Positions 241 to 18,094 of a stretch of DNA of 60,284 bases are shown in pieces. Source of the DNA: Guillardia theta CCMP2712 (Eukaryota; Protista; Cryptophyta); contig NW_005434644.1 in the NCBI RefSeq assembly GCF_000315625.1, positions 642,434 through 702,717 on the forward strand, read 5' to 3'. The notes beneath the pieces are model-generated. The model ran no database searches, had not been told where the DNA came from, and was given only the letters and a program-made list of their open reading frames with translations. Numbering within the stretch: position 1 is the first letter of the stretch; each line of letters starts with the position of its first letter. Both the position numbers and the translations under genes were made by a program.

Positions 241-3200
241 GAACCTCATGGTCTCTCTCTTCGTCGATCGCTTCAGCAAGCAGATGGACATGGAGCGGCA
301 GGTCAGGAACGCGCGGCCCAGGGCCCTGCAGGTCAGCAGGGAGCGGCTCCCGCAGATCTGGGACCAGCCAGACGAGGATTGGAAGAGAAGGCTGTCAGGG
401 ATGACGAGGAGGAAGAGGTTCAGAGGCTTCATGCACGCCTGCTTCCTCGCCAACTTCGTGGTGCTGCTGCTGCAGAGCTACAAGCAGGGCCAGTGGCAGA
501 CTCGCCTGTACGAGGTGGCGAATGTGTTCTTTGCGTTCGTTTTCAACACCGAGGTGGGTCGGGGAGTCTCTCCTCCTGCTCCTGCTCCTCTGACTTTCGT
601 GCTCCTCCTGCTCCTGCTCTTGCTCCCCCTCTTCCTGCTTGATTTCCTTCTTCTCTCGTCTCGCTCTCCTCCTTCTCTCATCCTCCTCTCGTCTCCTACC
701 CTTCCCTTCCCCTACCTCTTACATGTCCTCCCTCCCTCTCCCCCCCCTCTCCCCCTTCCTCATCTCACTTGCCCCAGGCTCTGCTCAAGATCCTGTCCGC
801 CAATCCAGCCGTTTTCTTTCACGACACGACTCAGTGCCTCGACATGTTCGCAAACCTCTGCATTTTCTCCGGCATCGCCCTCGACTACATGAAGCAGCAC
901 ACGCTGGCGGGCTCGTCCTGGGGTTCCCTCAAAACCTTCTTCCTCGACCCCCTCACCACCTCCATCATCCGCTCCCTCCGCATCTTCCGCCTCACCCACT
1001 GGGTCTCCGTCCTCCGTGCTGACTTTGACTTCGGCACTATCATCAACTTCCTGGTCGCCGCTGCCGCCATCCTGCTCGAGCTCTCCCTCGTCCTCGTCAT
1101 CGTCATCTTCATCTTTGGCGTCCTTGCCGTCCAGCTCTTCGGTAACCTCTGCAGCAAGGAGACCAACACCAGCGCACGAGATTCTCTGAGGTGATCCTTC
1201 TCTCCTTCTTATTCCTGCTTGTCCCTTAGTTCCTCCCCTCCATTCGTGTTCTCTTGCCCTGTTTCCTCTCCTCTTCTCCCTCCTCTGTTGTCTTGCTTTC
1301 ATCTCTACCCTCCTCCTCCTCTCCTGGAACCCTTGTGACGAGCCTCAGGTGTCTCCTGATGGAGGAAGCGCACAAACTGCCCGCACACGTCAGTTTCGTC
1401 GACCTGGGGTCTGCCGCCATCACCCTCTTCGTCGTCTCCATGGGCGACGGCTGGACGTCCCTCATGTCTGCCTGCTCCATCAGCGCCAGCGACTACCCGA
1501 GGACAGAAAACTACATGCAGGTTGTCATCCCCAACCTACAGGCCTACCAGCTCTTCAGGAACACTCCTGTAGGACGGGAGGCCCTAGCGACCGCCAAGTA
1601 CAACCTCCCGGGTAATCCTCCGTGCGACTCTTGTTCTGTCGCCTCCCCTTCCCCCTCTGAGATCGTTGTCGTTCACTCTCCCTATCTCATTCCCTCCTTC
1701 CTCCTCGTCTTCCAACCCTCCCCCTTCTTCTTTCATCTTCCCCTGCTCCTTCAATCTGCAACCCTCCCCCCCCCTCCCCCCTCTATTGCTTCTCCCTCGC
1801 TCTCCTATGATCCCTCCCCTCCTTTCTCGCAGGCTGCGTCTCAGGCTCGGAACTTCAGCTCCTCAGCGCCGCCGGCATCATCAACTGCAACAAGGACGTC
1901 CTCGCGTGCGAAGGGACGTGCGGGTCCCTCGCCTCCTTCTGCTTCTTTCCCGCCTTCTTCCTCCTCGCCAACGTCGCCGTGCTCGCCATCATCGTTGCAG
2001 CTCTGATTGAGCAGGTCTCGGCCAACGAGCTCCCCCTCTCCGGCATGCTCACGACCACCATGACCATGCGCAAGTTTCATGCCATGTACTGGGTGTGGAA
2101 GAGGAAGGCGAGGGGGAGGCAGAAGCTCGGCATCGTACCGGACGAGACCAAGTGTCACTTCTACAAGACCATGTACCTCGAGTCCATCCCTGACAAGAGG
2201 AAGGCGGCAGAGGAGGAGGCAAAGCAGCCGGTGAAGAGGAAGACTGCGAGGAAAGAGAAGCCCAAGCATGTCTCGTACCGTCAAGAGGCTCAACCCGTGC
2301 CTGGGAAGAAGGAGGGGGAGGAGGAGGACGCAGCGGTCCTCGCTCCACTTTTCGAGACTGAGGACTACGAGTTCAACGGGGGGCAGGAAGCGACGGTTGA
2401 CGGAGAATTCGAGCAGCTGCTGAGCCGGCTGAGGAGGAGGGAGAAAAGTCTGCTGCGGGAGTGGAGGAAAAAAGCCTTTGTCGCCTCCGACTTCTCTCAC
2501 TTCCTCGAGTCTGAGCAGCGAGGAGGCCTGCGCGACTTTCTGACGGACGTGGAGGAGCTGGAGGCCATCAAGGTCAAGTGCGACGACCTAGTGGAGAGGA
2601 GGTGGCAACTGTGGCGAAGCACTGAGGGGAAGAAGGGCAAGGGAAGAGCTGCAAGGACGGACGCTCTCCACACCATCAGGATGCTGCAGGCTCTCCAGAA
2701 GTGGATCCTGCGCGACAGGGCAGAGGAAGAGGAGAGGATGGAGCTTGAGATGCAGTCGCTCAACTACGTCATCAAGCAAGACGTGCGGGTACAGCTGGGG
2801 TTGGAGCAGGTGAGGGTCCGGAAGGCCTCCCTGCAACATAACTCAGACCAGCTGCTCCGCTTCCTCCAGGCCCGGGAAGATCAGGTCCTTGCCTTTGTCC
2901 GAACTCACGAGCAAGACCCCAGCGGTAGTCTGGGCCAGCATGCCCAACGGCCCGAGCATGAGGCTGACGAGGACCAGGCCGCCATCGCCGTCAGCAAGGA
3001 AGAGATCTTGAGCAGCCTCGGCATCAAGCCCCTCGCCAACCTCCTTCGAGAATGCGCAGAGAGCGGCTGGGACGCTACTGATCCCCCCAGCCTCCCCCTT
3101 GGGAGCCATGGCAGCCTGGTGAACCCCCGGGAGGCAGACTTCCAACCGCAGCAGGTGCAGCCGGAGGAGGCGGAGGAGCTGGCTAAGTCGGCCTCCTTCT

Positions 3201-4262
3201 CAGCCTTTAATCACTTCATGCCCGGTGAGCCTTGGCGGGCGCTCCTCTCTCCTCTCTCCTCTATCCTTCCTCTCCTTTCAGCCAGCTTCCTGCCTGCAAG
3301 TTGACCCGACACAGGAGAACGAGTGGTCGTGCGGAGGAAGGACGGGAGCTTCAGCGTAGGGACCGTGACCAAGGAGCGTCCGGGGGACCTCGTCGACGTC
3401 TCGCTGGGTAAGATGGAGGGGAAGGAGAGCTCTAGAGCCTCGTACGCCAAGAAGGTAAGGCTGGACAATAGACATTGCTGGCTTGCCCCTGGTCACTTGC
3501 GCTCTGCAGACCCTGCCGACCTGGATGGTGGGGAAGTTCAAACCGTCAACAGTGACAGCAGACCTGGTGGTCATCAAAGAGGTCCAGACTGGATCAGACG
3601 ACGAGTCCTTGGCCGAGAATCCGATCAGGACCATCTGCTCCAACGCGAAGATGAAGATGGAGGTAGATACTCTCGAGCGATCTCTGAGCTCTGAACTGCT
3701 GGTTGCCTTCGCAGAAAGGCAACCTTCACTCCGCCGAGAAGCGTCTACAGCGAGGGTGAGGACACTACCCAGATCATGTCTCGTACTTGGCCAGTCATCT
3801 TGACGCAACCGCAGCATGCGCATGTTTCCTACGTCCATCGAGATCCTTTCAACCTACTCGGAGCTGCTGCAGGTGAGACAACAACTGAGGACATGAACTC
3901 TGCTGTTCTGACAAGTTCTGCATCGCTGTAGCTGCAGGGACAAACTGCTGGCTCAGCCCTCTTCCAGGCTCGGATTCGACAGCTCAAAGGTCAGTTCCTC
4001 TTACCATCCGGTTCGATTCGATCAAGCAAAATCTCCCTGCTCCTTTTCCTCTCTCTACGGACCCCGGCTGCCCTCGCGGACTCCCTCTCCCTCTCCCTCT
4101 CCCTCTCCCTCTCCCTNNNNNNNNNNNNNNNNNNNNNNNNNNNNNNNNNNNNNNNNNNNNNNNNNNNNNNNNNNNNNNNNNNNNNNNNNNNNNNNNNNNN
4201 NNNNNNNNNNNNNNNNCCTCCTCCTCCTCCTCCTCATCATCATCATCACCACCACCACCACC

Positions 4263-4296
<34 letters not shown>

Positions 4297-5200
4297 TCAT
4301 CAACAACAACAACAACATCATCATCATCAACATCATCAACATCGTCATCATTATCATCATCATCGTCGTTCTCCTCACTTGATTGAATCTTGCTGTCAGG
4401 CGGCTCTCTTCTCCGTTCAGTCACTCATCTTTCCGCTCTCTCCCAACCAGCACAACTTCTGTGCCCGCAGCCTCGCAGCTCTCCATCTCCTCAAGGCCTC
4501 TAGGACCGGAGGCAACATCCCCCTCCTCCCCGACGTCAGCGACCGTCTCGCGCCCATGGACAGGAGGGTGGGGGTTGCGTACGTCACCTCCGACCTCCAA
4601 GATCATGCTGTCTCCTCCGATCTCGAGGCTGTCTGGGCGAGCCACGACGCTCGTCGCCTCATCTTCTTCTGTGCCTGGAGCTCAGGAGGCGGTTCCTCCC
4701 GTCCTCTCCATCCTCGTCATCCCTGCCTGACCAACCCAGTAAGTCCCTCCTGATCCTCCCGCTGGCTGAAGGAGGAGGTCGCAGGCTGGAAGTGTCCTGG
4801 ACTTGAGGGGGATGAGTGGGAGGAAGGCAGCAGAGGCTCTTGCGAGGCAGAAGGTCCTGCTCATCGTTGACCTTCATGGATGGACGTCAGGACATGCCAT
4901 GTCAATCCTATCCTTTGTGCCGGTCACTCTGCCTCTACCTCTACCTCTACCTCTACCTCTCCCTCTACCTCTCCCTCTCCCTCTACCTCTACCTCTCCCT
5001 CTCCCTCTCCCTCTCCCTCTCCCTCTACCTCTCCCTCTCCCTCTACCTCTCCCTCTCCCTCTCCCTCTCCCTCTCCCTCTCCTTACCTTCCCTTCTCATT
5101 GCTTGTCTTGCTAGGACCCAGTTCGGGGCACCAGTCGGGGAGTGGAACCGCACAAGATGGAGGAGGCGATGTTTAAAAATGTCTGTTTTAAGTTGAAGTC
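241..5200 (+). CDS. Voltage-gated Ca/Na-type cation channel, last domain(s) plus long C-terminal tail (5'-truncated, multi-exon; 3' end uncertain)
   Basis: Spliced exons give the end of a preceding S6 (NLMVSLFVDRF), S1-S2 (FLANFVVLLL; ANVFFAFVFNTE), an S4 with periodic Arg (IIRSLRIFRLTHW), S5 (IFIFGVLAVQLFG), a pore loop (ITLFVVSMGDGW) and S6 (FFLLANVAVLAIIVAALIE). A charged/coiled-coil tail follows (1979-3225). Exons beyond ~3990 are poorly constrained because of the gap at 4117-4216. Confidence 0.8.
4930..5083. repeat. (CTCTCC/CTCTAC)n hexanucleotide microsatellite
   Basis: Directly visible. The same unit occurs at 4080-4116 and 40249-40296 and generates the spurious LPLPLP and SPSPSP ORFs. 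Confidence 0.95.
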
Positions 5201-6003
5201 TGTTTGTACCATATAACAATGTTGTAAAACTCGAGCAAAATGCAAATACAGACTCTTTGTTAGTATTACCAGGTAAGTTTTAGTGATCTGAAGTTGCAGC
5301 TGTACAAATCAGTACTGAATCCTACATAAGTCTACACGGGAGCTGCAAAAAAGGTACAAATATTTGTACCAAAAGTCACAGATTCAAAGTACTTTAATAT
5401 GTTATTTCTACCATCTCTCCATTACATAAACATTTTAAAAATAATACATAAGCCTACAGTGACCCGTCTGGTACACCCCCACCCTACTCCGATATCACCC
5501 CTACCCCCCAAGCATTCTCAACACCACTGGATGCGATAGAACAGAATGCTATCTACCTACTACCCCACAAACAGTCTTTTTGCTTCACTACCCCACCTAT
5601 CTGCATGACACACCCCACCCCTCCATTTGAAACTACCCCTCCCTTACACCGTCACCGGATCGCTGGATATAAGAGATGGCGGAGTTGGGGAGAGGGGAGG
5701 GATGGAAGTAGAGTAGAAAGGGAGAATGGGAGAGAGGAGGATAAACAAAGAAAGAAAGGAGACGATACATACAGTGGCGATATTCTTTCAGTCATTCGTG
5801 CAACACCTGCCAAAGCATTTGCAGGGCAGATAGTGGGGGTTGCGATGGTGGGCACATGTTACTGCTGTGATCCGCGTTCCCTGCCTGACACATGTTTCCT
5901 CTTTCTCTCGCAGGATGGTTTCCGGACAGTAATTTCCCAGTCATTCTCATTTTAAACCAGACACCTGAGTCCAAGGAAGACAGATCGATCAACCCTATCA
6001 AGA

Positions 6004-7749
6004 ATGGCCAGCCATCACTCACTGTTTATCGCCACGCAATTCCTTTTCCTGCTCCTGGCTGAGTCATACAACATGAATGGGCTCTATCGGTCCACTCCTA
6101 CTTTAGGACTTCGGTCAAAGAAGTGCGGCTCCTATCCAGGTTTCTCCTCTTTCATCCCTCGTCCATCCTCCCTGTGCCCTTCCAATCGGCTGAGGCCCGG
6201 CCGAATGGAAAGCTGCAGCCTTTCCATGTCGCTGGACATCGACGAAATGGAGCCAGAGTGGTTACCGATGATGGATCTCCAGGCCAGTGACATTGAGGCT
6301 TCGCCCAACGCAACTGTCCTTCCCTTGTTCCCCTTGGGAAGCTTCGTGTACACGGTGAGTGGCGTCCCTCGACGACCGAGCGACCTGAAGTTCTTTGCAG
6401 CCGCACTCGGAGCATCGTCTCAACATCTTCGAGCCAAGATATCGTGCTCTGTACAACGACATCCTCTTCAGCGGGTCGAGGAGGTTCGCCGTCTGCTCCA
6501 TGGATCCCGTGGATGGCAGATTCGCTGCCGTAGCTAGCGTTTTCTACTTGAAGGATCTCAAAGAGGTCAGCGCGGCGACCAACGATGCGGTCAAGTACAT
6601 CTGCGATCACGAGGTCTGCAGAGTGAAGCCCCACGTGCTCGGTTGTGATCGGCCGCCTGTGTTGCCGCAGGTCATCGGGAGGATCAGGATCAAAAAGGTG
6701 CTGAACCCCAAGGTGTGGGAGGACAGGTCGACGTACCTCAAGGTGGAGAGAAGCTCTGATGGAGAGGGGAGTTGTGTATTGCTTTGACAGCCCAAAGGTC
6801 GAGGCTGAGTACATCGAGGACAAGGAGGAGCCAGAGGGCAGCACCAGGTTGGCGGACATGCCAGATAGCATGCCGTACCACCCGCAAACGTGTGGAGCTG
6901 ACTGCGGCTGGCAGCGAGCTGGAGAAAAAGCTGGTGCTAACCTACAACGATCTCGTGCAGCTTCAGCATGAAATGAATGAAGACGTCAAGTTTACGAAGG
7001 TGTGATCGCAAGCCCCGTGTAGAGGGCGTGCAGTGATTCAGATTCTCAGGAGTCCGTGGACAAGTTCAAGATCGCCAAAGGACAAGAGGTTTGGTCGGCG
7101 GTGGAGATGTGGCAGGTGAGGGAGAGTTTGCTGCGCAGCTCCATGTTGTGTGATCAGTGCGAAGGTGTTCCAACAGCAGCGGCTCCTTGCTCGTCAGCAG
7201 GAGATGCAGAAAGAGTTTCAGGTTCACCTTCTTGCTTGCCAGCCTCTTCCACACTGTGAGCATCCTCAAGGCGAAGCTGCTGGCGTACCTGATCAAGGAG
7301 AAGGGGATGGGAGGACTCCCCAACGCGATTGACATCAACGGTATGCAAGCTCCCGATGCGATGACAGGGCAGTGTAGAGCTTACTTGTCAACAGAACTTC
7401 CAGCTAATCTCCAGCAGGAAGTGAGGTCCCTCCAGGTCTGCCTCTCTCTCCCCCTCCCTCCCTCTCCCTGTCTGCTATCCACCTTCCCGTCGATGACAAG
7501 ATGAACTTTGAGTGACATGAGCCACGGCAGGCGAGGATGCAAGACGATCTTCAACCGCTGGCCGAGCGCGACATGATGGATATGCAGCTGCTGGTGATCT
7601 GAGCCTCCCTGTCCTCTTGCCATCTTATCTCAGTCCAGATCGAGTGCGACAGCCACTCCAGGCGTCTCGAGCTGATGGACGCGATGCTGACTAAGGAGAG
7701 GAAGAGGCTCGAAACCAAGAAGACCCTCAAGAGCCTCTTCAACAAGTGA
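6004..7749 (+). CDS. LON peptidase N-terminal (substrate-binding, PUA-like) domain protein, probably plastid-targeted
   Basis: Spliced VLPLFPLGSFVYTP-HSEHRLNIFEPRYRALYNDIL..RRFAVC matches the LON_N signature (LPLFPL..P...L.IFEPRY). No AAA+ or protease domain follows. The N-terminus has a hydrophobic signal peptide and a Ser/Arg-rich transit-like segment. About 10 short introns. Confidence 0.85.
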
Positions 7750-7762
7750 GGGACCCTCCATG

Positions 7763-8140
7763 TTATGGCAGGGTACGAGCTTTCCTGGAGGCAATCGGCT
7801 GTCCTTCCTGCGGCAGACTTGGTATTTGTACCACATAGACACCTTCAGCTCCGTTCCCTTTTATCATTAACTTCCCGTCCGGCTGCTGTAAAATGATAAA
7901 TTCTAGTAAGCCCGACCCATCACCCCACATTTTTGCGCAATCCTCCTCAGGCATTCGACATGACATCGTCGTTCGATGTGACGTGCACTGCCTTAGCTCC
8001 GGCTCAATTTGGCAGGTATCTCCGGCGTGATTTCCCGGCTCGGAAGCTGTTGCAGGCGGCGTCCTGGACTCATCAGGCCGGAGTTGGTCCCGATTCTTGT
8101 TGTATTCTGCAAAGGAAGTGCCACAACATAAACATAGCAA
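7763..8140 (-). CDS. Possible small hypothetical protein
   Basis: The 3' part of the ORF looks protein-like (WGDGSGLLEFIILQQPDGKLMIKGNGAEGVYVVQIP) and a G-rich (- strand) upstream tract lies at 8150-8280. No recognisable family, and the start is unclear. Confidence 0.3.
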   Translation of the reverse strand: MLCLCCGTSFAEYNKNRDQLRPDESRTPPATASEPGNHAGDTCQIEPELRQCTSHRTTMSCRMPEEDCAKMWGDGSGLLEFIILQQPDGKLMIKGNGAEGVYVVQIPSLPQEGQPIASRKARTLP

Positions 8141-10041
8141 TCAGAACATATCCTTTCTCTTCACACACCCCCTCCCCCGCACTCCTTCTGTGTTGACTGT
8201 GTTTTTATCGCTGTTGCCCGCGCTCGCATATTCCCCTTCTCTTACACCCCTTTACATGGCAATCGCTGCCGCCCTTACTCCCGAGGAGTTTGTCGCAAGG
8301 TTGGAGAATTTTGAAACTTCGAATAGTCAAAGTTTGAAACTTTGATGTATTTAGTTTCAGGGTGATAGTAGGACCCGTGGTTTTCAGTACCCCTCTTTGT
8401 AGATGAAATAGACCGGGTAGCATTGGAAGAAGGAAACACAAAGGTGTACCAGGAGTGAAGGAGGTAGTGTTCTCCAGAAAGGAGGGGTACTGGAATAAAG
8501 TCTGAATCCGGGGAGGAGGTAAGATGGGGTAGTGAATGGGATTAACAGGGGTGTATGAATCAATGACTCTGAAAATGGGTGGGTAGATGAGTGGTTTTAA
8601 TGGGAGGGAGGGAACTAAGGGGGTAGGGGTAAAATAACTGGATGGGTCGAGGAGGTGGGGGTGGGGCTCGATAGCTTTTAGCAGGGTAGCGTCGAAATAC
8701 AAAATTCTATTTTTGAAGGGGGTAGGAAAAACAAGAGCTGTAGCAGGGGGTACTACACATATTCCAATGGACAATGAACGGGGTAGGTAGATTCAGGTTC
8801 ATCTAGTTGTGGGTGGGGGTGGAGCAAATACAGGACAAGGGGGGGTAAGGGTCGTGTTTTCCGTTATCAAAAAATGGGGGTGGGGTGGGCGAGCCCCTGC
8901 AGGGTCGGAGTTCTACCATTGAAATCTTCTTACCTTTTGAAATATCATTCTTTTATTTGGAATTTTAGAATATATTTCTATCAGCAAAGTGTACATTTTG
9001 GTGAAGAGTATGAAATTTAAAATTCTTCAAATGTTTGGTGGGTTGATCTCATCACCCCTTCTCAGACTGTGCAAGCAGGGGTAGTCAAGGATTGGGGGTG
9101 GTAGGGATCTGAAGCTACAGGGAATGGAAGGACAACGTACAATGTGCAGGGGAGAGGATAGGATCGGAGTGAAGAAGAGCGAAATGGAGTGTAGACAGTG
9201 CAGCACACTACAGGAAACAAAAGTTCTCAATGCAGAGGTGATGAGAAGAAAGATAACATAATGGCGATGATACCGCGCGAGGACAAGATTCAGATTCAGA
9301 TTCGAAGCTCAGATGAGATATGACGCTGAGCCTGAGGTGAAGATGGTGATAGAAAACGAGTTTGAAGATAGATATCAGTGAATTTTTGTAGTGAGACTGA
9401 CAATGTGGTCAAAAATAGATAGTTCGACACGATTTGTAGACAACAAACATGGCAAAGCGAGCACTTCGTTATGAGAACACGAAATTGTGAAAACGATGAT
9501 GACGATGAAGATCCAGAGGGGCAGAGATACAAAACAAGGGTACAAAAAGTACTAGAGGCCTACCAGAACTGAGGAACAGACTAGGGAGAGAGTCGCTGTG
9601 CTGGCAGGGACCTGCAGGTCACCTGAATCCTTCATGACGACCCCCATCAACAAGGAACGGGGATCGGGACTACGTTTGTTTCGAATGTTTTGTGTGATGT
9701 GTAGAGAGATCCAAGAGCGAAACTTGGATGATTTCGATTTTGGATAGCAAGCCGAGAAGGGTCGTAGGATAACAAACAAGAGAAATGCTCCACACGCATA
9801 CTCTCCGTCACGAAACCAATTGCGATCTGCCAAGTGCGACTTTCTTGTGGTCTGTTGGAGATTGCATCATAAGATGCAATGCTTTGATTTCCATATTCTC
9901 AGTCTTTTTGCGGGTGCTTTTGCCCATGAGTTATGTATCTTGAACTCGTTGCTGTCCTGAAGCCTGGAGTTTGGCCGCAAATTTTGCTTTTTGAATTGTT
10001 TGGTTCATGTCATTGCATCTGACAAAAGCATTTTGAAACAG

Positions 10042-11075
10042 ATGTTTCTTGCCGTTCCAGTTTCACATCCCTACGTTCCATGCTACCCGAGGGAAACTCG
10101 CAAGGTAGGAAGGATCGAACAAAGAAAAAGAATCCTATGCTTTGGAGATAGTCTCACCGCTGGATATTACGCGCAAGGCAATCGTTTTCACCCGTATGCA
10201 AATCTACTCAAGGTTGTCCATCTTTCTCTCAATATCGTTTCTGAAATGCAATCTTGAAGAAGTTATTGGGTGTCGAAGTGGATTACATCGGGCTTTCTGG
10301 ATGGACCACTCGACAGGTTTGCTTGACGCACAAGACGTTGCATCAATAACTTTTGGTCAAGATGTGCGATAGCAAGGATAGCGATTCGTGCGTGGATGTT
10401 GTGAGGAGGCAAGAACTTGTTTCGTCCAAGTTTGATGCTCATCAATATTTTGATCGTCAGATCTTGGAGGGGACTCCGTGCACAGCTAAAGAGAAATCGA
10501 TACACACACTGCATCATACTTGGTGGCACGAACGATGTGTCAGCTTCTTCCCCTGACATGTGATACAACGAGGATTTTCTTGAGATGCCAGAGACTGATT
10601 GTCCCCAGGATTCTATCGAACCTCAGAACCCTGCACGCCATTGCCCGCCAATTCGGTTCTGTTTTATGTTCTTCGTCATTCTTGTTGTTTATCTTTGTTG
10701 TCTCCAGGCTGCAAGACTGTTGCGTTGACTATCCCAGAGCTCGCTGCAGGTGAGTCAGGCAGGCGGCTTCATGCTCCACTTCTTACCTCCACGTCAGAGA
10801 GGCGACAACCGCAAATCCACGAGACGAGGCTGCGGGTGAACGAGGCGATTCTCCAGCGCAAGATTGACTGCGACCTGGTTGTGGACATCGACAAAGTTTT
10901 GCCTCTTGCGAAAGCCACACAAGTTCAGAGGATGAGCATCTGGGAGCCCGACGGCCTCCACTGCAACCTGAGGGGTAAGGCGATAGCCTCAGGGGAGAAG
11001 GTCTAACGCTTCACGTGTCTCAGGTATGATACCGTCGCGAGAGCCATTTCGAGTCAGATCACCCAAGTCATTTGA
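10042..11075 (+). CDS. SGNH/GDSL-type hydrolase (lipase/esterase)
   Basis: All four blocks are present across short introns: ILCFGDSLTAG, IGLSGWTT, IILGGTND and WEPDGLH. Confidence 0.9.
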
Positions 11076-11148
11076 CTTCATGTAGAATATGTTTGAACAA
11101 CTAACACGCTTTCATGTTTCTTGTAATATGATGATATATTCGCTCTTA

Positions 11149-14100
11149 TTAAAGGAAGAGCTTGTAATGGACCTTCAACCAGATCACGGTTCCGCGCATG
11201 ACCCGATACCACCATGCCCGCTTTGGAAGTCCCTTCTTGTCCTGTTCGAGCCTGTTGATCAGCCAATCCAACCTGAAAGACCGTGAGGGGATCACAAGAC
11301 AACAACTCATTTCACCTCTCATGTCCGTTCTTCTTGTTGAAGTCGATTCTATCCTGGTTCTTGTTCTTGGTCGCGATCCGCAGGCCCCTTCGGAACTCAC
11401 GCATGGAGTAATACTTGTACCAGAACATGTGACGGAAGCTCCAGATGTAGCGCCGAGATGCCTTCTTGTACTTGGACATGCGATCCTCCCACTTCTTGGC
11501 GTAGTCGTCATAGATTTTCACGAGCTTTCCGCGATATTCCTTCATCTTGGCCCCATCGCAGTTTCCGGAGAACCAGCACTGCAACGAGCGAGTTAGTTCA
11601 GTCACGCCAGGTGAGACTTTGTTACCTTGTGCTCTTCTTGTCTCAAAGTCCTCAAGATGTCTGTGTAGGTCTCTCTTCCTTCATAGAGCTTCCAGTATCG
11701 GTCTACAAGCCGATATCCCACGGTTCCCGACTTTATCTTGCTTCTCCAGTATTGGATGCGCCTGGTGAACACCTTGCGCCATCTTGATCGCCAATTTGTC
11801 CAGGCGTTGATGCTACGCTCAAGAGCATTGTACTGAGAAGTTCCGGGTTTTGTGAAGACTCGCTGCCTCTTCCTTGTAAATCTGATCCACCATCCCATCC
11901 AGTACAGCATGCGCCCTTGGTATCGCATCATCCTGTAGTAGTCTCGACGCCATCGTTTGTCTCCTGCGGGTCTAGTGTGCGCTACTGCATTTCTCCAGCG
12001 CACCATTCTCTTCACGTAGAATTGCCACATCCGGAGCCAGTACTTCCACACCCGTGCGTAAACCCTCATGTATTCTCTGGAGTGATACTTGTACGACCAC
12101 AGCGAGGACCTGGTCCTGGCGGAGCTTCTCTTGGAGTAGGAGGATCGCCACCTCAGATACGCCTTCTTCTTGTACCTTGCCCAGCGGTACCAGCGATACC
12201 AGTACCTCCACCAGCGCGATCGTCGGTTAAGTTCGTGCAGTCGCTGGTGCAGTTTTAAGATCATTGTGTTGTAGATGGCGTACATCTGATATCGAGACTT
12301 CTTGTATTCTCGCCAGAGCTTCTTGTAGAAGTAGGAACTCCTGTCTACACCTCCATACTTCATCATCCATCGGCTCCAGAACGACCGCCTCCGCAGCACG
12401 TACCACCTGTAGTAGGAGTACCACAACATACGGCGGAAGTAGTAACGGTACTGTCTAGATCGTTTGTGCTTTCGCTCTGCAAGAACCTTCTTCGAGTAAT
12501 CGTTCTCGCGCTTCTCAAGGATATCCATCACGCTCTCTTCTGATCGCCTCATTTCTTTCCAGGCCTTGAGGAATTCTTCATCCTTGTATCCCTTCTTGCG
12601 CACCGCCCACCAGCTGCGTTCCAACTTGTACATATCTCTAAGGGGCTGGCGATAGTTCGCGGATCGTTCGCTGTATCGAGAGTAATACCTTTCCCAGTAC
12701 TTGTACGCTGCCGAGCTCTTGGGCAGCTTGCCGACCCACGTCTTCACTGTGCTCAAAAACTGCTGTTGCGCCTGCTTCTTCTTCTCTCGCACCTTGTCCA
12801 TTTCGCCGCGGATCTTCTTGTAGTCATCGCTCGACGTTGAGTACATGTGACTCCATTTCTTGTGGAAGTTGATCCACCAGGCATACCAGTGAAGCAAGCG
12901 CCTGTTGTACGACCTGTAGTGATACATGGCATGCCGCCAGTGGTAATATCCTGGACGATACTTATCCAACTTCTTCTTCCAATATTCCATTCGCCCCTCG
13001 TAGAACTGCAACACTCGGTTGTAGTACTTCTCGATGTGCTCTCTAGCTTTGTTCGACTGTTCGTACCCCACCTTGAGGTTGTAGAATCGATGAAACCAGT
13101 AGTATGCTCTTCTTCGTGACCTGTATCGAGTTCTTGCTCGAGCTCTTCCTAGTCGCTTGGTGCTCCATCGATACCACGCGTAACACCAATTCCATTCTCT
13201 TCCACGCTTACGAATTTGTGACATTCGAGTCTTGGTGAAGTGAGCGATATCCTTGTAATCATCTCGCAAAACACTCCTTGCCTTGTGGAGCTTTCCACGA
13301 GCTTCGTTTCTCTCAGACCCACGCAATCTGCGGACAAGCCAGTTCTTGTACCAAACATCCCACATGTGGACACGCATTCCTTTCCACTTGTAGATAGCGT
13401 AAAATCTGAAGTACCTAGTGTAATTTCTGCTGCGTTTGGACAAATTCTTCAGCTTGGCTTCATAAGATTCCCACTTTTGTTTGTACCAATCGTAGACTTT
13501 GTCTCTGAGGCCTTCAACTGTTGGTTCATATTTCTTCCATCGTTCCGAGCCGGCTTTTGAACGAACAGTGTAATACATGGCATAGTAATACTCTCGCCAC
13601 AAACTTCTGAAATCTTTCCTGGACTGATAAGCGCTTTGCCTGTTCTTGAGGGATTGGTAGGCCTTCCCTTTAGAATTGTACTTCTTGAGCTTCTCAGACC
13701 AATACTCCAAACGCTTCAGGTAACTGTGTCGGAGATTTTTCCTCCACGTTTGCCAGCGTTGAATTTGGATCTCAAGCTTCTTGTAGCCGTTGGTGCCCGA
13801 CTTGTAGTATCTCTGACGATGTTGCAAGAACCGAATCCACCACTTCCCCCAGTTGATGAGGCGAGCCCAATACAGCCTGTAGTAGTAGAACGATCTCCTC
13901 CATCGATGCGAGCCAGGACGGTACTTGTATAGCCTTGCCCTCCACCACACCATCTTCCGAACATAATAGTGCCAAACTCGTTGCCATCGTTTCCAGATTC
14001 GTTGTACATAGATTCGATAACTGCGACTTCCCACCTTCATTTGCCACACTCTTCTGCGATATCTCTTCGATTTGCTCTTCAACATGGACCTCCAGATGGA

Positions 14101-16893
14101 GCGGTAACGAGAGTACCATGAAGTAGTCCACCTGTGCCATCTCCACCAGTATCGATAGGCTCTACCACCTCGTCTGCAAACCTTGAGGTGCTTCTTCAGT
14201 TCTGTCTTCATGTCTCCGAGGTACTCCAGCATGGTCTTCATGTGCTTGTATCTCAACCTCGTCACTTGGGCTCGTAGAGCGGAGCCCTTGCGCAACCTGG
14301 CTGCCCGTTTGTAATCAAACCAGACCATACGTCTATAGACCCATAGGACATAGTAACGCCACCACATGTGGTACTTCCAGTAGTGCTCATACCTGTGAGA
14401 TCCTTTCTTCAAAGATCCAAGTTTCTTGTTGTAATCGTCTACTTGATCTTTGAAAAACTTCAAGACCGGAGTTCTCCATTTTCTCATCTTGTACAGCACT
14501 TCTCTGGAATCCTTGCTTCCTGCCTTAGTCGACCAAAATTTTCTCTCCCACTCCATCCACTTGTGATAGTTTGAGCGCCAAGTTTTCGTTTGTTTTCTCC
14601 GCTCTCTGGAAGCTGCCAGACGTCGTGCCGCTTTGCTATCCTTCTTGGACTTCAGCTTTTCGTTGTACTCCTTGACAGTTTTGTAATAAGATTGAATCCA
14701 ATCTCTTCTTGCCTTTTCATATGTTTCAATGTCTTTGGTCACTGATTTGTACATGTCGGGATAACGTTTGAGATATCGCCTTCTCCTCTTCATGAAACGA
14801 ATGTACCACCAGTACCAACGGTAGCCTCTCCATACGTATCTTCTCCAATGATAGTACGCATGCAACCAACGAGAGCTTCCAAGCTTTCTCTTCTCAAGAT
14901 GACCCTTCCAATACGCTTCCCATTTCTGATAAATGGCATTTATCTTCTTCCACCTTGCATCGATCCTTTCGATGTACTTCTTGTACTTGTCACTTGTGAC
15001 CTTATACTTCCAAACTCGACGCTTATTCCGCAGAGCTCTTCTCTTGTCCCTAGTTCGTCTGGCCGCGAGCATTCGTCCGTACCATCGAGATGCATGGTGA
15101 TATCGACGATACCAATAATTGTAACCATGCGAACCCTTCTTGTAACACTTCCAAATCTTCTTATACCTCACAGCCAAAGCCTTGTATGAATCAGAAGTCT
15201 TCTTTTTGATCTCACGGAGTTCCTTGGAAATTTCTTTATACTCGTTGGTATGGCGACCCATTGATCGTCTTAGTCGACCCAACCACGACACATACGCGCG
15301 ATACATTCTGAACAGGCGTTTTCGATACAACCTAATGTAACGGAACCCTCGGTAGTATTTTGTGGTGCATTCTTTCTGTCCATCGGTGTACTTTGTCCAT
15401 CGCTCAGAACCTGCTTCATACGTTTTGATCAACTGCTCAAACCTGTGTTTGGCTTTTTCAATCGCCTTTTTGTAGTCCTTGCTCCCTCTGCGATACTTTC
15501 TGGACTTTGCGACATTTCTTCGATATCTTACATATCGCTGACGTGCCTTCTGAAGCTTCTCATTGCGTTCAAGGTCTGCAGAGAGCCGTTTGTGGGCTTT
15601 GCTTGACTTGTCAATTTTCTTCAGCCACTCTTGATTTTTTTCAATTAGCATTTTTTGAAAATTTGAGTTTCGCTCACGATTCGTTTTGATTTCCTTGGTC
15701 AGCGACTCATAACTTCCGCACTTCTTGTTCTTATCCGTGCACTTAGGATACACACGTCGACGTTTGATCAAGAATCTGATCCATCTTGAGTACCAACCTT
15801 TGAGTCTTCGAGCATATTTTGCATATTCAGAGTAGGTTTTCAACCATTCATCACTTCCAGGCGATTTGGAAGAGCTCAATTGTTGGCTGTACTCTGTCAT
15901 CTTCTTGCTGTAACCCCTCTCCAGACGTTTCATGTTTCGAACAATAACACTGAGGTAACGGGAATATGCGGTATTCGTAGGACGGTATGCCCAAAACCTC
16001 TTCATGGTTTGGCGGAGTGCCTGTCGAGAATCTGCACGCGCCTTCTGGTTCATCTCCTTCCTTTTTACACCAGTTGCAGCTGTACACATGTTAGAGACAA
16101 GTACATCCAACAAAATTCAATACGTACATGTTTGGCTTGAGCCAGAACTACTGCTGCCTGTCTTCCCGCTGGCAGTGTTTCCTCCACCAGTGGATCCCTG
16201 ACCCGAGGATGAAGAACCCGATCCCTTGCCCGAGGAAGAAGAACCCGATCCCTTGCCCGCGGAAGAAGAGCCCGTGCCAGACGACGAAGACGAGGAACTT
16301 GATGAAGAGGACGAGGACGAAGAGGCTGACGACGACGACGAGCTTCTGCCTCCATTCGAACCTGAACTAGCTGATCCACCTTGATCAGTTCCTGGATAGC
16401 CGTAGATGATGATTTTGGAATCCTTCGAAACAGTGTTGCCGGATAAGAAGAAGCCGCTGTTTTGAATGTTGCTGTTAGCACCACATGGGCATTTGGAACA
16501 ACCACATTCATCCGATTTTGAAGACTTATCAGTTGACTTCAGAGAAATGAAAGGCAACTTTGGCACTTTCATCTCTATGGTTCCACCATTTGTCTGCACA
16601 CGAGCAGCCCTTGATTTGAATGAGATGGCAGGCTGCTCAGTGTGTCCTTGATCACGGTCGCCTTTGGTAAGCCCAAGAAGCGCTGTTCTTGATGTTTGCG
16701 AGGTTGCATGTAGGGTACCCTTGGCTACGAGCAGGAGAACCAGACAAGCACTTAAGCATGCTAGAGCAGCATGGCCTAGGCGACGCAATCTGATCCTGGT
16801 TCCAAAACGATGAAATTAGTTTAGATCGTGACATATCACACGATATCAGATACTAATCAATGAAAGACGTTGATACCATGAGCATATTCTCAT
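11149..16893 (-). CDS. Giant (~1841 aa) Arg/Lys/Trp/Tyr-rich repeat protein with N-terminal signal peptide/anchor and Ser/Gly linker; unknown family
   Basis: In-frame model: exons 16893-16877, 16795-16128, 16079-11626, 11578-11316 and 11272-11149, joined by GT-AG introns of 81, 48, 47 and 43 nt; total 5526 nt. The 4.45-kb central exon is open. Exon 1 is the least certain part. Confidence 0.9.
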
Positions 16894-18094
16894 GAGCAAA
16901 GGAGCATGAACATAAAATCTGATAAATCAAACAAGGTGCTGATATTACGAGCAGCACAGAGACAAGCAAAAGCACTCAGCTCCACTGAATGCTTCTGTAT
17001 TTCGTCAACCTCATATCATACACAAAGTTTCAAGAGAAAGGTAGGGGGGTTTCAGGAGGGAAGCATCGCTCCTCACCTTTTAGGAAGGAATGGCGGCGCC
17101 GTATGCGGCGCCGCCCCCAGCATTGCGAAGAGGCAGAGCTAATATGGATCCGGCCAAGAGGCGTTCTGCAAAACTACCGTGACACACCCCCTTTTCTCCC
17201 CGATAAATAACCCCTCCAATTTCCATTTGGAGCACAACCCCTCCCTGCCTGCCGGTACAAATGATCACAACTTCTACTAGTGTATACCACCCCTGTGTTC
17301 AGACCCCTACCCACCCTCTCCTGCTCTTCCACTGTTCATCTCCACCTCACTGAAAACCACCCCTGTCCATTCCGGCAATGCTCATTTCGCACCTAAATGT
17401 CTCCACCCCTACCCCTATTTTAACTATTAAGTACCTACTGTTGACCACACATTTTATTACCCCAAGGAGTTCAGACCCCCACCGGTTGTACCCCAGGGCA
17501 TGATTCCTACTCCGATTTGAGTTCCCAGAAGGTTGACGAAGCTGCCAAATGTGGTATACCGGGTGGTCAGAATGTGGGGGGTGGGTGGTCCACAATCCAG
17601 TCTGAGGCGGCACTGGATGGGTGAGTGAATATTGATAGATGCCTGAATCGAGAAAAGCAGACACTAGAGCACATCACTTGTGCCCTGACGGCGTCTGAGG
17701 TCATTCATTCAGATTTCAGGTGTGTTATAAAAGTGTAGTTGTTAGAAACTTATTTATATAAGAGTTTATGGTACTAATTACATGGATATATACTTCTGGT
17801 ACAAAGCAGAGTACCGCTAAACGAGTCGGAGGGTCGGTAAAGTCGGAACACCTCTACTGTCATTTACCCTTTCAAAAACTTTTACCGCCTGGTTGAGTAA
17901 ACAGGAATCCGCTGCACCCAACTTGGCAACTTAAATTTCAGTTATAAAGGGCAACAGGTTTATGGGAAAGCTGAAAATTTTTAAATCTCACAACTAACTT
18001 TCAACTACTAGTACAGTACAGCTAGTAGTGTTCGATCTTTACTCAAAGTTCGATCACGCAAAGTGATAGTACTGAGTTAAAAATCACTATGACT

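Follow-up and report, generated by a model that had tools for sequence, protein, structure and literature searches.

A giant gene of Guillardia theta encodes a polycationic, predicted helical-repeat protein of a new cryptophyte family, a tentative cell-surface scaffold

Introduction

What kind of protein devotes some 1600 residues to a chain dominated by arginine, lysine, tyrosine and tryptophan, and where in a cell could so strong a polycation be put to use? The question is raised by a minus-strand gene in a 60,284-nucleotide (nt) stretch of the genome of the cryptophyte Guillardia theta CCMP2712 (NCBI RefSeq assembly GCF_000315625.1, contig NW_005434644.1, positions 642,434 to 702,717), hereafter the window, in whose coordinates positions are given. 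An earlier reading of the letters alone (the sequence-only reading) had placed a gene of 1841 amino acids (aa) at 11149-16893. It proposed a secretory-pathway protein made of repeated amphipathic helices, with a structural role in the cell covering or extrusome, adhesion, polyanion binding or the release of membrane-active peptides as candidate functions. The locus is a single-copy, spliced, transcribed nuclear gene, and its product has conserved relatives in other cryptophytes. To our knowledge, hardly any gene has been linked to the proteins that make up the cryptophyte cell covering on the outer side of the plasma membrane; the locus supplies a concrete, expressed and conserved candidate gene for this outer covering.

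Five repeat units and their predicted fold

Most of the protein is encoded by a minus-strand open frame of 1503 codons (11602-16113), which a single stop codon separates from a 223-codon frame (16117-16788) in the same reading frame. The longer frame contains 15.8 % arginine, 12.5 % lysine, 11.0 % tyrosine and 6.7 % tryptophan, with only 0.8 % proline and 0.5 % cysteine. Histidine had also been listed among the dominant residues; at 2.5 % it is not one of them, and the rest of that description stands. Over the basic region of the complete protein (aa 240-1851), arginine, lysine, tyrosine and tryptophan amount to 15.6, 12.8, 10.9 and 6.7 % and aspartate plus glutamate to 7.9 %, with a net charge of +331 and an isoelectric point of 10.6. 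The orthologues described below carry +308 to +408, and their charge and aromatic content are conserved even where single residues differ.

This region is periodic. Five copies of the motif [RW][WY]I[RN]F are present, exactly as had been claimed, with their Phe codons at 15774-15772, 14796-14794, 13830-13828, 12867-12865 and 11880-11878 and spacings of 326, 322, 321 and 329 aa. The units are laid out as follows.

15136-16077, minus strand: unit 1, a repeat of about 325 aa
14170-15135, minus strand: unit 2, a repeat of about 325 aa
13207-14169, minus strand: unit 3, a repeat of about 325 aa
12220-13206, minus strand: unit 4, a repeat of about 325 aa
From 12219 through exons 4 and 5, minus strand: unit 5, a repeat of about 325 aa

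Pairwise identity between the units is 21-38 %, and their Smith-Waterman scores lie 8.8-17.5 standard deviations above those of 200 composition-preserving shuffles. HMMER comparisons between units return E-values of 2e-20, 3e-13 and 3e-8. The two halves of the unit also align with each other, profile against profile, at a probability of 97 % and an E-value of 3.6e-11 over 115 columns. In view of the shuffles, the E-values and the alignment of the halves, the similarity is not a by-product of the biased composition. Since the two halves align, with their turn motifs in register (KVGS with KAGS, RPGS with KRSR), the unit goes back to the ancient doubling of a module about 160 aa long. Both the significant self-alignment at about 325 aa and the two related halves of each unit thus bear out what had been read from the letters, as does the divergence of the units at the DNA level: no DNA repeat links one unit to another, and the sole tandem repeats in the gene are short ones in its Ser/Gly spacer. 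A HMMER search with a unit over the 87-Mb genome gave no match outside the gene, which therefore has no paralogue.

The fold was modelled with AlphaFold2 from a 16-row alignment of units. The model of unit 3 has a mean predicted local distance difference test score (pLDDT) of 93.4 and a predicted template modelling score (pTM) of 0.77; it consists of eight helices of 33-41 residues joined by turns of 3-7 residues at the K/R-x-G-S motifs. A two-unit model (pLDDT 89.3, pTM 0.58) contains 16 helices, with a turn at the unit boundary. The helical hairpins broken at K/R-x-G-S turns that had been anticipated are therefore also what the models contain. Apolar and aromatic residues recur with a periodicity of about 100 degrees. 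In a descriptive heptad analysis, whose phase was chosen to maximise the effect, some 40 % of the a and d positions are aromatic, compared with some 2 % at f, and basic residues lie elsewhere. Overall, the prediction is of about 42 long amphipathic helices, antiparallel and in tandem, and the models are compatible with a single unbroken superhelix as well as with some ten four-helix modules in a row. We infer that aromatic and cation-pi contacts may stabilise these helices. Some 1600 residues predicted as regular folded helices with a charge of about +330 and 18 % Trp plus Tyr represent an unusual chemistry, of interest for the folding of such a polycation and for its binding partners, and the protein is also of interest as a defining member of a new repeat family.

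Comparison with known folds yielded only generic resemblances. Foldseek searches of the PDB with the one-unit and two-unit models returned nothing at E < 1e-3, the 14-3-3 and TPR rows having template modelling (TM) scores of 0.1-0.3. A wide VIA-align search returned only generic three- and four-helix bundles, designed and natural, with Z scores of at most 11.3 over 100-130 residues, a range that the tool itself rates as common for any helical bundle. The best shape match in the ESM Atlas is a TPR-like protein (TM 0.49-0.50, 208 residues aligned), and a language-model atlas search with unit 3 gave no usable match. The solenoid that had been proposed is only partly supported: the all-helical tandem hairpins hold, and the best shape matches are generic bundles (Z up to 11.3) and a TPR-like protein at TM 0.49.

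The repeat shares its all-alpha character and tandem antiparallel hairpins with TPR/HAT, 14-3-3 and spectrin-type proteins and with designed bundles, and its best shapes are a TPR protein and three- or four-helix bundles (Z 8-11). Compared with TPR, whose helix-turn-helix repeats span 34 residues, however, its helices are much longer (33-41 residues versus about 14-17) and its unit comprises eight helices in 325 aa; no Pfam TPR or HAT domain was found in it, the Atlas match reached a TM of 0.49, and the TPR/HAT rows of the PDB search with the two-unit model had TM scores of about 0.1-0.2. Spectrin repeats (PF00435) are three-helix units of about 106 aa. No Pfam match to them was obtained, and the half-unit here has about 160 aa and four helices, with G-S turns at every boundary, including that between units, in place of a continuous inter-repeat helix. 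Shape rows for plectin and CCDC141 were weak (root-mean-square deviation 26 A; TM 0.23).

Family searches pointed the same way. At E <= 1, Pfam returned zero families for the 1503-aa frame, the N-terminal exon and the orthologues P0001 and P0002. NCBIfam returned only WXG100, at an E-value of 0.084 and 13 bits against a cut-off of 45, and a profile of the A2 alignment found nothing below E 0.3 among PDB sequences. No cryptophyte protein of this kind was found in the literature on the periplast proteome, ejectisomes and Trp-rich secreted proteins, and the text of a Teleaulax life-cycle paper contains neither 'Tamp' gene identifiers nor the words 'differentially expressed'. The absence of a recognisable family, as first reported, is thus sustained across Pfam, NCBIfam, PDB sequences and Foldseek. 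Judged by sequence and predicted fold, the protein family and its repeat unit match nothing described; this is a new family, whose function we infer.

Conservation among cryptophytes

The closest relative is the product of a Hanusia phi transcript, which is 86 % identical, has the same joins between exons 3 and 4 and between exons 4 and 5, and ends in an identical C-terminus (...KVHYKLFL). The Hanusia protein lacks six residues, WFSGNC, just past the exon 3/4 junction (11557-11577). This difference could reflect a lineage-specific indel at the exon start or an alternative acceptor in Hanusia.

More distant orthologues share 37-43 % identity, and each has five anchor motifs at the conserved spacing. 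They include Rhodomonas-like proteins (P0002 and P0117, in a cluster with a Rhodomonas salina fragment), a complete open reading frame of 2050 aa from Teleaulax amphioxeia (P0043), and proteins from marine metagenomes, Tara included (P0003, P0004 and L005). The anchor motifs are equally spaced in the Guillardia protein, P0001, P0002/P0117 and P0043. The features that characterise the family, namely an N-terminal anchor, a Cys/beta motif, a Gly/Ser spacer, five positional units and the W-W-I-R-F motif, are all present in the Guillardia protein.

In a maximum-likelihood tree of 19 units from four taxa, each unit position forms its own clade with a support of 97-100. Since the positions form separate clades, the five-unit architecture arose before these genera diverged and has persisted, in agreement with the old and selected architecture that the sequence-only reading had suspected. 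So far the family has been seen only in cryptophyte transcriptomes (Hanusia, Teleaulax and Rhodomonas-like) and in marine metagenome contigs. An exhaustive scan by profile of 1.84 billion representative proteins yielded only 36 matches, mostly short fragments, and all of the named ones come from Teleaulax, Rhodomonas or Hanusia. A word-index protein search with the unit alignment returned nothing of 177-562 aa, and full-length queries of the same kind of index returned only four and two proteins.

A corrected gene model

The frame breaks in the gene are removed by small GT-AG introns, which excise the stop codon between the two long frames and two more breaks toward the 3' end. The exons of the earlier model recompute to exactly 1841 aa. 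The corrected model is as follows.

17077..17123, minus strand: exon 1 (coding, corrected), encoding MLGAAPHTAPPFLPK and the first two bases of an Arg codon; donor GTGAGG from 17076
16796..17076, minus strand: intron 1, 281 nt, GT..AG, enclosing the earlier exon 1 (16893-16877) and its 81-nt intron
16128..16795, minus strand: exon 2, encoding the basic tail, hydrophobic anchor, stalk, Cys cluster, short beta-like motif and Ser/Gly spacer
16080..16127, minus strand: intron 2, 48 nt, GT..AG, inside the Ser/Gly spacer; RNA contigs X1 and X2
11626..16079, minus strand: exon 3, units 1-4 in full and unit 5 to two thirds of its length
11579..11625, minus strand: intron 3, 47 nt, GT..AG, skipped by X1 and X2 and not by X15; the Hanusia protein joins EEHK|C here
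11316..11578, minus strand: exon 4, unit 5 continued
11273..11315, minus strand: intron 4, 43 nt, GT..AG, with X1, X2 and X22 reads; matched in the Hanusia protein by NGHER|LEW
11149..11272, minus strand: exon 5, completing unit 5; TAA stop at 11151-11149

Public sequencing runs were compared over positions 11100-16950. Two of them consist of RNA-type contigs (X1 and X2), one is a DNA-type run of the same organism at a depth of about 6 (X15), and one is recorded as RNA-seq and consists of raw, 3'-biased reads (X22). The contigs of X1 and X2 skip 11273-11315 (43 nt), 11579-11625 (47 nt) and 16080-16127 (48 nt). On the plus strand each of these stretches reads CT..AC, hence GT..AG in the minus-strand gene, and the DNA-type run is colinear with the genome without skipping any intron. 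The 43-nt joint is further crossed by nine raw X22 reads with six different starts. An alternative donor for intron 4 at 11400 was discarded; it breaks the frame, and enumeration of candidates led to the RNA-confirmed 43-nt intron at 11315-11273. Contig word depth is 1800-10900 in X1 and 82 in X2, by a measure that the tool itself warns is a poor one of expression; the high X1 value suggests an abundant mRNA.

Three of the four introns in the sequence-only reading (43, 47 and 48 nt) are thus confirmed by RNA, as is its exon 2 acceptor. Its start did not survive. In X2 the contig shares the acceptor of that model (exon 2 from 16795), departs from the genome at 16797 and continues into 30 nt placed uniquely at 17079-17108. 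Because exon 2 is joined to this segment, the start at ATG 16893 with an 81-nt first intron is ruled out; the coding sequence begins instead at ATG 17123, intron 1 has 281 nt, and the protein has 1851 aa. In the exon 1 region the sequence runs from the ATG (17123-17121) to CCT AAA AG | GTGAGG. The corrected protein, of 230 kDa, begins MLGAAPHTAPPFLPKRIRLRRLGH-AALACLSACLVLLLVA-KGT, with MLGAAPHTAPPFLPKR in place of the MRICSW of the 1841-aa model.

Three further observations support ATG 17123. An in-frame TAG lies six codons upstream (17141-17139), the P-K-R-x-R across the new junction recurs in a Rhodomonas-like orthologue (SPRPKRARR), and a basic Pro-rich tail of 20-24 residues precedes the hydrophobic stretch in all three full N-termini. 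One X1 contig, at a depth of about 1830, runs colinear across intron 1 (16796-17076), where the X2 contig is spliced, and therefore represents either a retained intron or abundant pre-mRNA. The intron-1-retained form has no long open frame from ATG 17123.

The N-terminal region and its extracellular relatives

From its N-terminus, the protein comprises a basic Pro-rich tail, a 16-aa signal or anchor, a short stalk, a Cys cluster with a beta-like motif, a Ser/Gly tether and about 1610 aa of five units. The hydrophobic signal or anchor, the CGCSKCPC motif and the Ser/Gly spacer had all been recognised earlier, and all are present at the following positions.

16723..16770 (aa 25-40, 16 aa), minus strand: hydrophobic signal/anchor AALACLSACLVLLLVA, after a 24-residue Pro/Arg-rich tail
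16399..16506, minus strand: CGCSKCPC cluster (16483-16506) and motif IQNSGFFLSGNTVSKDSKIIIYG (16399-16467), conserved in orthologues
16078..16380 (aa 155-239), minus strand: Ser/Gly low-complexity spacer, holding a 27-nt x 3 tandem repeat and spanning intron 2

The layout of tail and anchor is common to the orthologues, whose hydrophobic stretches have 16-23 aa. On this sequence evidence, the N-terminus is most likely an endoplasmic reticulum (ER) entry signal of the type II signal-anchor kind, a retained anchor being suggested because the basic tail is long and conserved. Directly behind the hydrophobic stretch lies TLHATSQTSRTALLGLTKG, which is Ser/Thr-rich and acid-free for 19 residues, with Thr rather than Phe after the likely cleavage site as judged by eye. 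The Cys/beta motif aligns with 'CGCCGKPGPCGCCG...IHNTGFFLNGNTVRRGSNIIIYG' of Teleaulax and with 'C..C.VKNSGTYFGHNHISGTARVYVYG' of the Rhodomonas-like protein. A Gly/Ser-rich spacer occupies the same place in P0016, P0043, P0117 and L008; its position is conserved and its sequence is not, the orthologue spacers being Gly-rich and not Ser-rich as in the Guillardia protein, which has a run of about 30 Ser. The spacer looks like a flexible, probably glycosylated tether. The 27-nt x 3 repeat in it (16193-16274) encodes GKGSGSSSS and is likely to vary in length.

The orthologues extend this architecture with modules of a recognisable kind. In the Rhodomonas-like protein L022, a basic tail and a 23-aa anchor are followed by about 27 G-X-Y triplets, and these by the Cys motif, the spacer and the five units. 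Its G-X-Y segment matches Pfam Collagen at an E-value of 7.9e-13 and 48 bits against a cut-off of 27, which makes it the only orthologue with a collagen segment by this test; the same profile (PF01391) gave no match to the Guillardia N-terminal exon. Orthologues of the Teleaulax type end in a Cys-rich module of about 150-190 aa. Its pattern, for which Pfam gave no match, is W-P-x-G-x-C-Y ... L-C-G-x-C ... G-L-R-F/W-G-G-K-x-F-D-D-N ... N-I-C-x-L-A-x-Y-G-N-K. This module is not attached to the Guillardia gene, and its only match within the window has an E-value of 0.03 and two stops. Elsewhere in the Guillardia genome, at the loci below, the module terminates a collagen-like protein that carries a type II anchor of its own and also neighbours a protein with three H-type lectin domains (Pfam E 1.9e-9 and 1.2e-28).

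G000:C5:257103-257486 (L010): Cys-rich module
G000:C175:3847-4104 and 6455-6982 (L011, L013, L014): Cys-rich module
G000:C188:59-244 (L012): Cys-rich module

The secretory or extracellular space is where collagen helices, disulfide-type modules and lectins are at home. The collagen segment and Cys-rich module of the orthologues therefore favour a cell-surface or matrix context. Taken together, type II anchor, collagen, Cys-rich module and H-type lectin reveal modular cryptophyte matrix proteins and point to an undescribed extracellular matrix toolkit.

A candidate scaffold of the cell surface

Among the roles proposed at the outset, the domains of the orthologues favour a polyanion-binding scaffold at the cell surface. 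The reading that we tentatively prefer, and that comes close to an even chance, is a membrane-tethered or secreted polycationic helical scaffold that binds polyanions at the cell surface. Insertion into the ER would be through the N-terminus, which most likely serves as a type II signal anchor. The helical region would then be exposed on the outer side of the plasma membrane, or else in a secretory compartment's lumen, and held on a flexible and probably glycosylated tether. There it would form a rod or ribbon measuring tens of nanometres, its core rich in aromatic residues and its surface studded with Arg, Lys, Tyr and Trp. Through charge and cation-pi contacts, this surface may bind polyanions such as acidic or sulfated glycans, acidic matrix proteins and possibly microbial surfaces. 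The result would be a scaffold of the surface coat, either the surface periplast component or a glycocalyx.

The nearest architectural parallels are type II anchored collagens (XIII and XVII) and class A scavenger receptors (SR-A, MARCO), with which the Rhodomonas-like orthologue shares a basic tail, anchor, spacer, G-X-Y segment and large C-terminal ectodomain. Polyanion binding is established for SR-A and MARCO. Unlike them, the Guillardia protein has no collagen segment, and its ectodomain is a 1600-aa helical repeat rather than an SRCR or NC domain. The likeness is one of architecture and presumed mode of action, with no homology of sequence or fold. In composition and secretory passage, the protein also resembles diatom cingulins and silaffins, Plasmodium Trp-rich antigens and mussel foot proteins, which are similarly aromatic and basic. 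Except for the Plasmodium antigens, these are mostly disordered or built of short repeats; the present protein, by contrast, is predicted to be a folded helical repeat of 325-aa units, and Pfam gave no match to it, the Plasmodium Trp-rich antigen domain included.

Several observations weigh against this preferred reading. At the level of the gene model, both transcript contigs end at 17105-17108, 13-18 nt before ATG 17123. The 16-aa hydrophobic stretch is short for a membrane anchor and may instead be a cleaved signal peptide. In cryptophytes, moreover, the combination of an ER signal and a Ser/Thr-rich stretch behind it can equally direct a protein to the periplastidial compartment as a bipartite signal. 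The extracellular argument rests on the orthologues, since the Guillardia protein itself has neither a collagen segment nor a C-terminal Cys-rich module. Finally, the family was not found in other cryptophyte orders, the named ones among the 36 matches of the profile search all being Teleaulax, Rhodomonas or Hanusia, and a universal role in the periplast is therefore unsupported.

A more specific version of the cell-surface scaffold, rather unlikely as it stands, would make the family a high-molecular-mass protein of the outer covering: a polycationic rod, collagen-trimerised in some species, that assembles with acidic glycans into the surface periplast component. If it were true, the periplast would contain a type of protein architecture not seen before: a folded repeat in which an aromatic core is combined with a net positive charge of about 20 %. 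For the surface periplast component polypeptide of Komma caudata, we know of no published sequence. The title of the paper on it, as cited elsewhere, describes that polypeptide as a high-molecular-mass component that passes through the secretory pathway (Perasso, Ludwig and Wetherbee, 1997, cited in PMC6212826 and PMC12223506). The cryptophyte periplast is described in the literature as proteinaceous on both sides of the membrane (PMC12223506; PMC6212826). The Komma polypeptide and the Guillardia protein have size class and secretory pathway in common; Komma, however, belongs to another order, the family was not detected outside Guillardia/Hanusia, Teleaulax and Rhodomonas-like taxa, and an identity of the two would be hypothetical.

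Alternative roles

An unlikely alternative places the protein in the extrusome (ejectisome) or another secretory granule, as a polycationic rod packed with acidic partners in a Golgi-derived vesicle, where it would aid storage, condensation or discharge. Ejectisomes are made in the secretory pathway, and the ER entry signal, extreme charge and large size of the protein would all suit such a vesicle, as would the abundant mRNA that the high X1 contig word depth suggests. Yet ejectisomes occur in all cryptophytes, whereas the family was found only in Guillardia and Hanusia, Teleaulax, a Rhodomonas-like alga and marine metagenome relatives. The known ribbon proteins of ejectisomes ('ejectisins' or Tri proteins) are small RebB-like polypeptides; at 230 kDa and with no Pfam match at all, the Guillardia protein is of a different kind. 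The collagen segment, type II anchor and H-lectin-associated module of the orthologues also resemble the architecture of a surface matrix rather than that of an extrusome.

It is still less probable that the protein is a defensive or prey-capturing polycation, whether a membrane-active or antimicrobial agent, a precursor cut at dibasic sites into Trp/Arg peptides, or a catcher of bacteria like a scavenger receptor. Its amphipathic helices, rich in Trp, Arg, Lys and Tyr, resemble cationic antimicrobial peptides, and the Rhodomonas-like order of type II anchor, spacer, collagen and ligand-binding region parallels that of class A scavenger receptors, which bind polyanions. Set against this are the models, which show confident and tightly packed helical units, and the absence of regularly spaced processing sites. 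Each unit position has been conserved separately over a long divergence, which a mere bag of peptides would not need, so that the confident predicted fold and the positional conservation argue against the peptide precursor. As for bacteria catching, neither sequence nor fold is homologous to SRCR domains or scavenger receptors.

Quite improbable is targeting by a bipartite signal to the periplastidial compartment or nucleomorph, where a giant basic protein might bind nucleic acids or ribosomes. Cryptophytes require Phe at +1 after signal cleavage for stromal import. The Ser/Thr-rich, acid-free TLHATSQTSRTALLGLTKG that follows the hydrophobic signal resembles a transit peptide, has no Phe at the likely cleavage site and would fit the periplastidial route, and the extreme positive charge would suit nucleic-acid binding. 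However, the collagen segments and disulfide-type Cys-rich modules of the orthologues lead one to expect an oxidising secretory or extracellular space and not a cytosol-like compartment, and this makes periplastidial targeting unlikely. The long poly-Ser/Gly tether and the conserved basic tail of 20-24 residues are likewise untypical of bipartite signals.

Least credible of all is an adhesive or structural cement formed by complex coacervation, in which a phosphorylated poly-Ser run would pair with the polycationic aromatic region as in marine bioadhesives: the run of about 30 Ser is indeed joined to a Lys/Arg/Tyr/Trp-rich region in one chain, and cation-pi adhesion is the chemistry of mussel and sandcastle-worm proteins, but the phospho-Ser polyanion is not conserved because the orthologue spacers are Gly-rich rather than Ser-rich, the basic region is predicted to be folded and not disordered, and the organisms are free-swimming flagellates.

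Further observations at the locus

At the 3' end of the gene, raw X22 reads on the plus strand show loose poly(A) ends after 11167 and 11171, with a depth of about 34 for first mates on the plus strand. A convergent plus-strand transcript therefore seems to terminate inside exon 5. The contig of X2 extends about 1.6 kb past 11100 and probably merges the two overlapping transcripts. Within positions 10000-18000, the G+C content of the gene is 0.45-0.49, as against 0.55-0.60 in its flanks, and this low value is probably explained by a coding content rich in Lys, Tyr and Arg.

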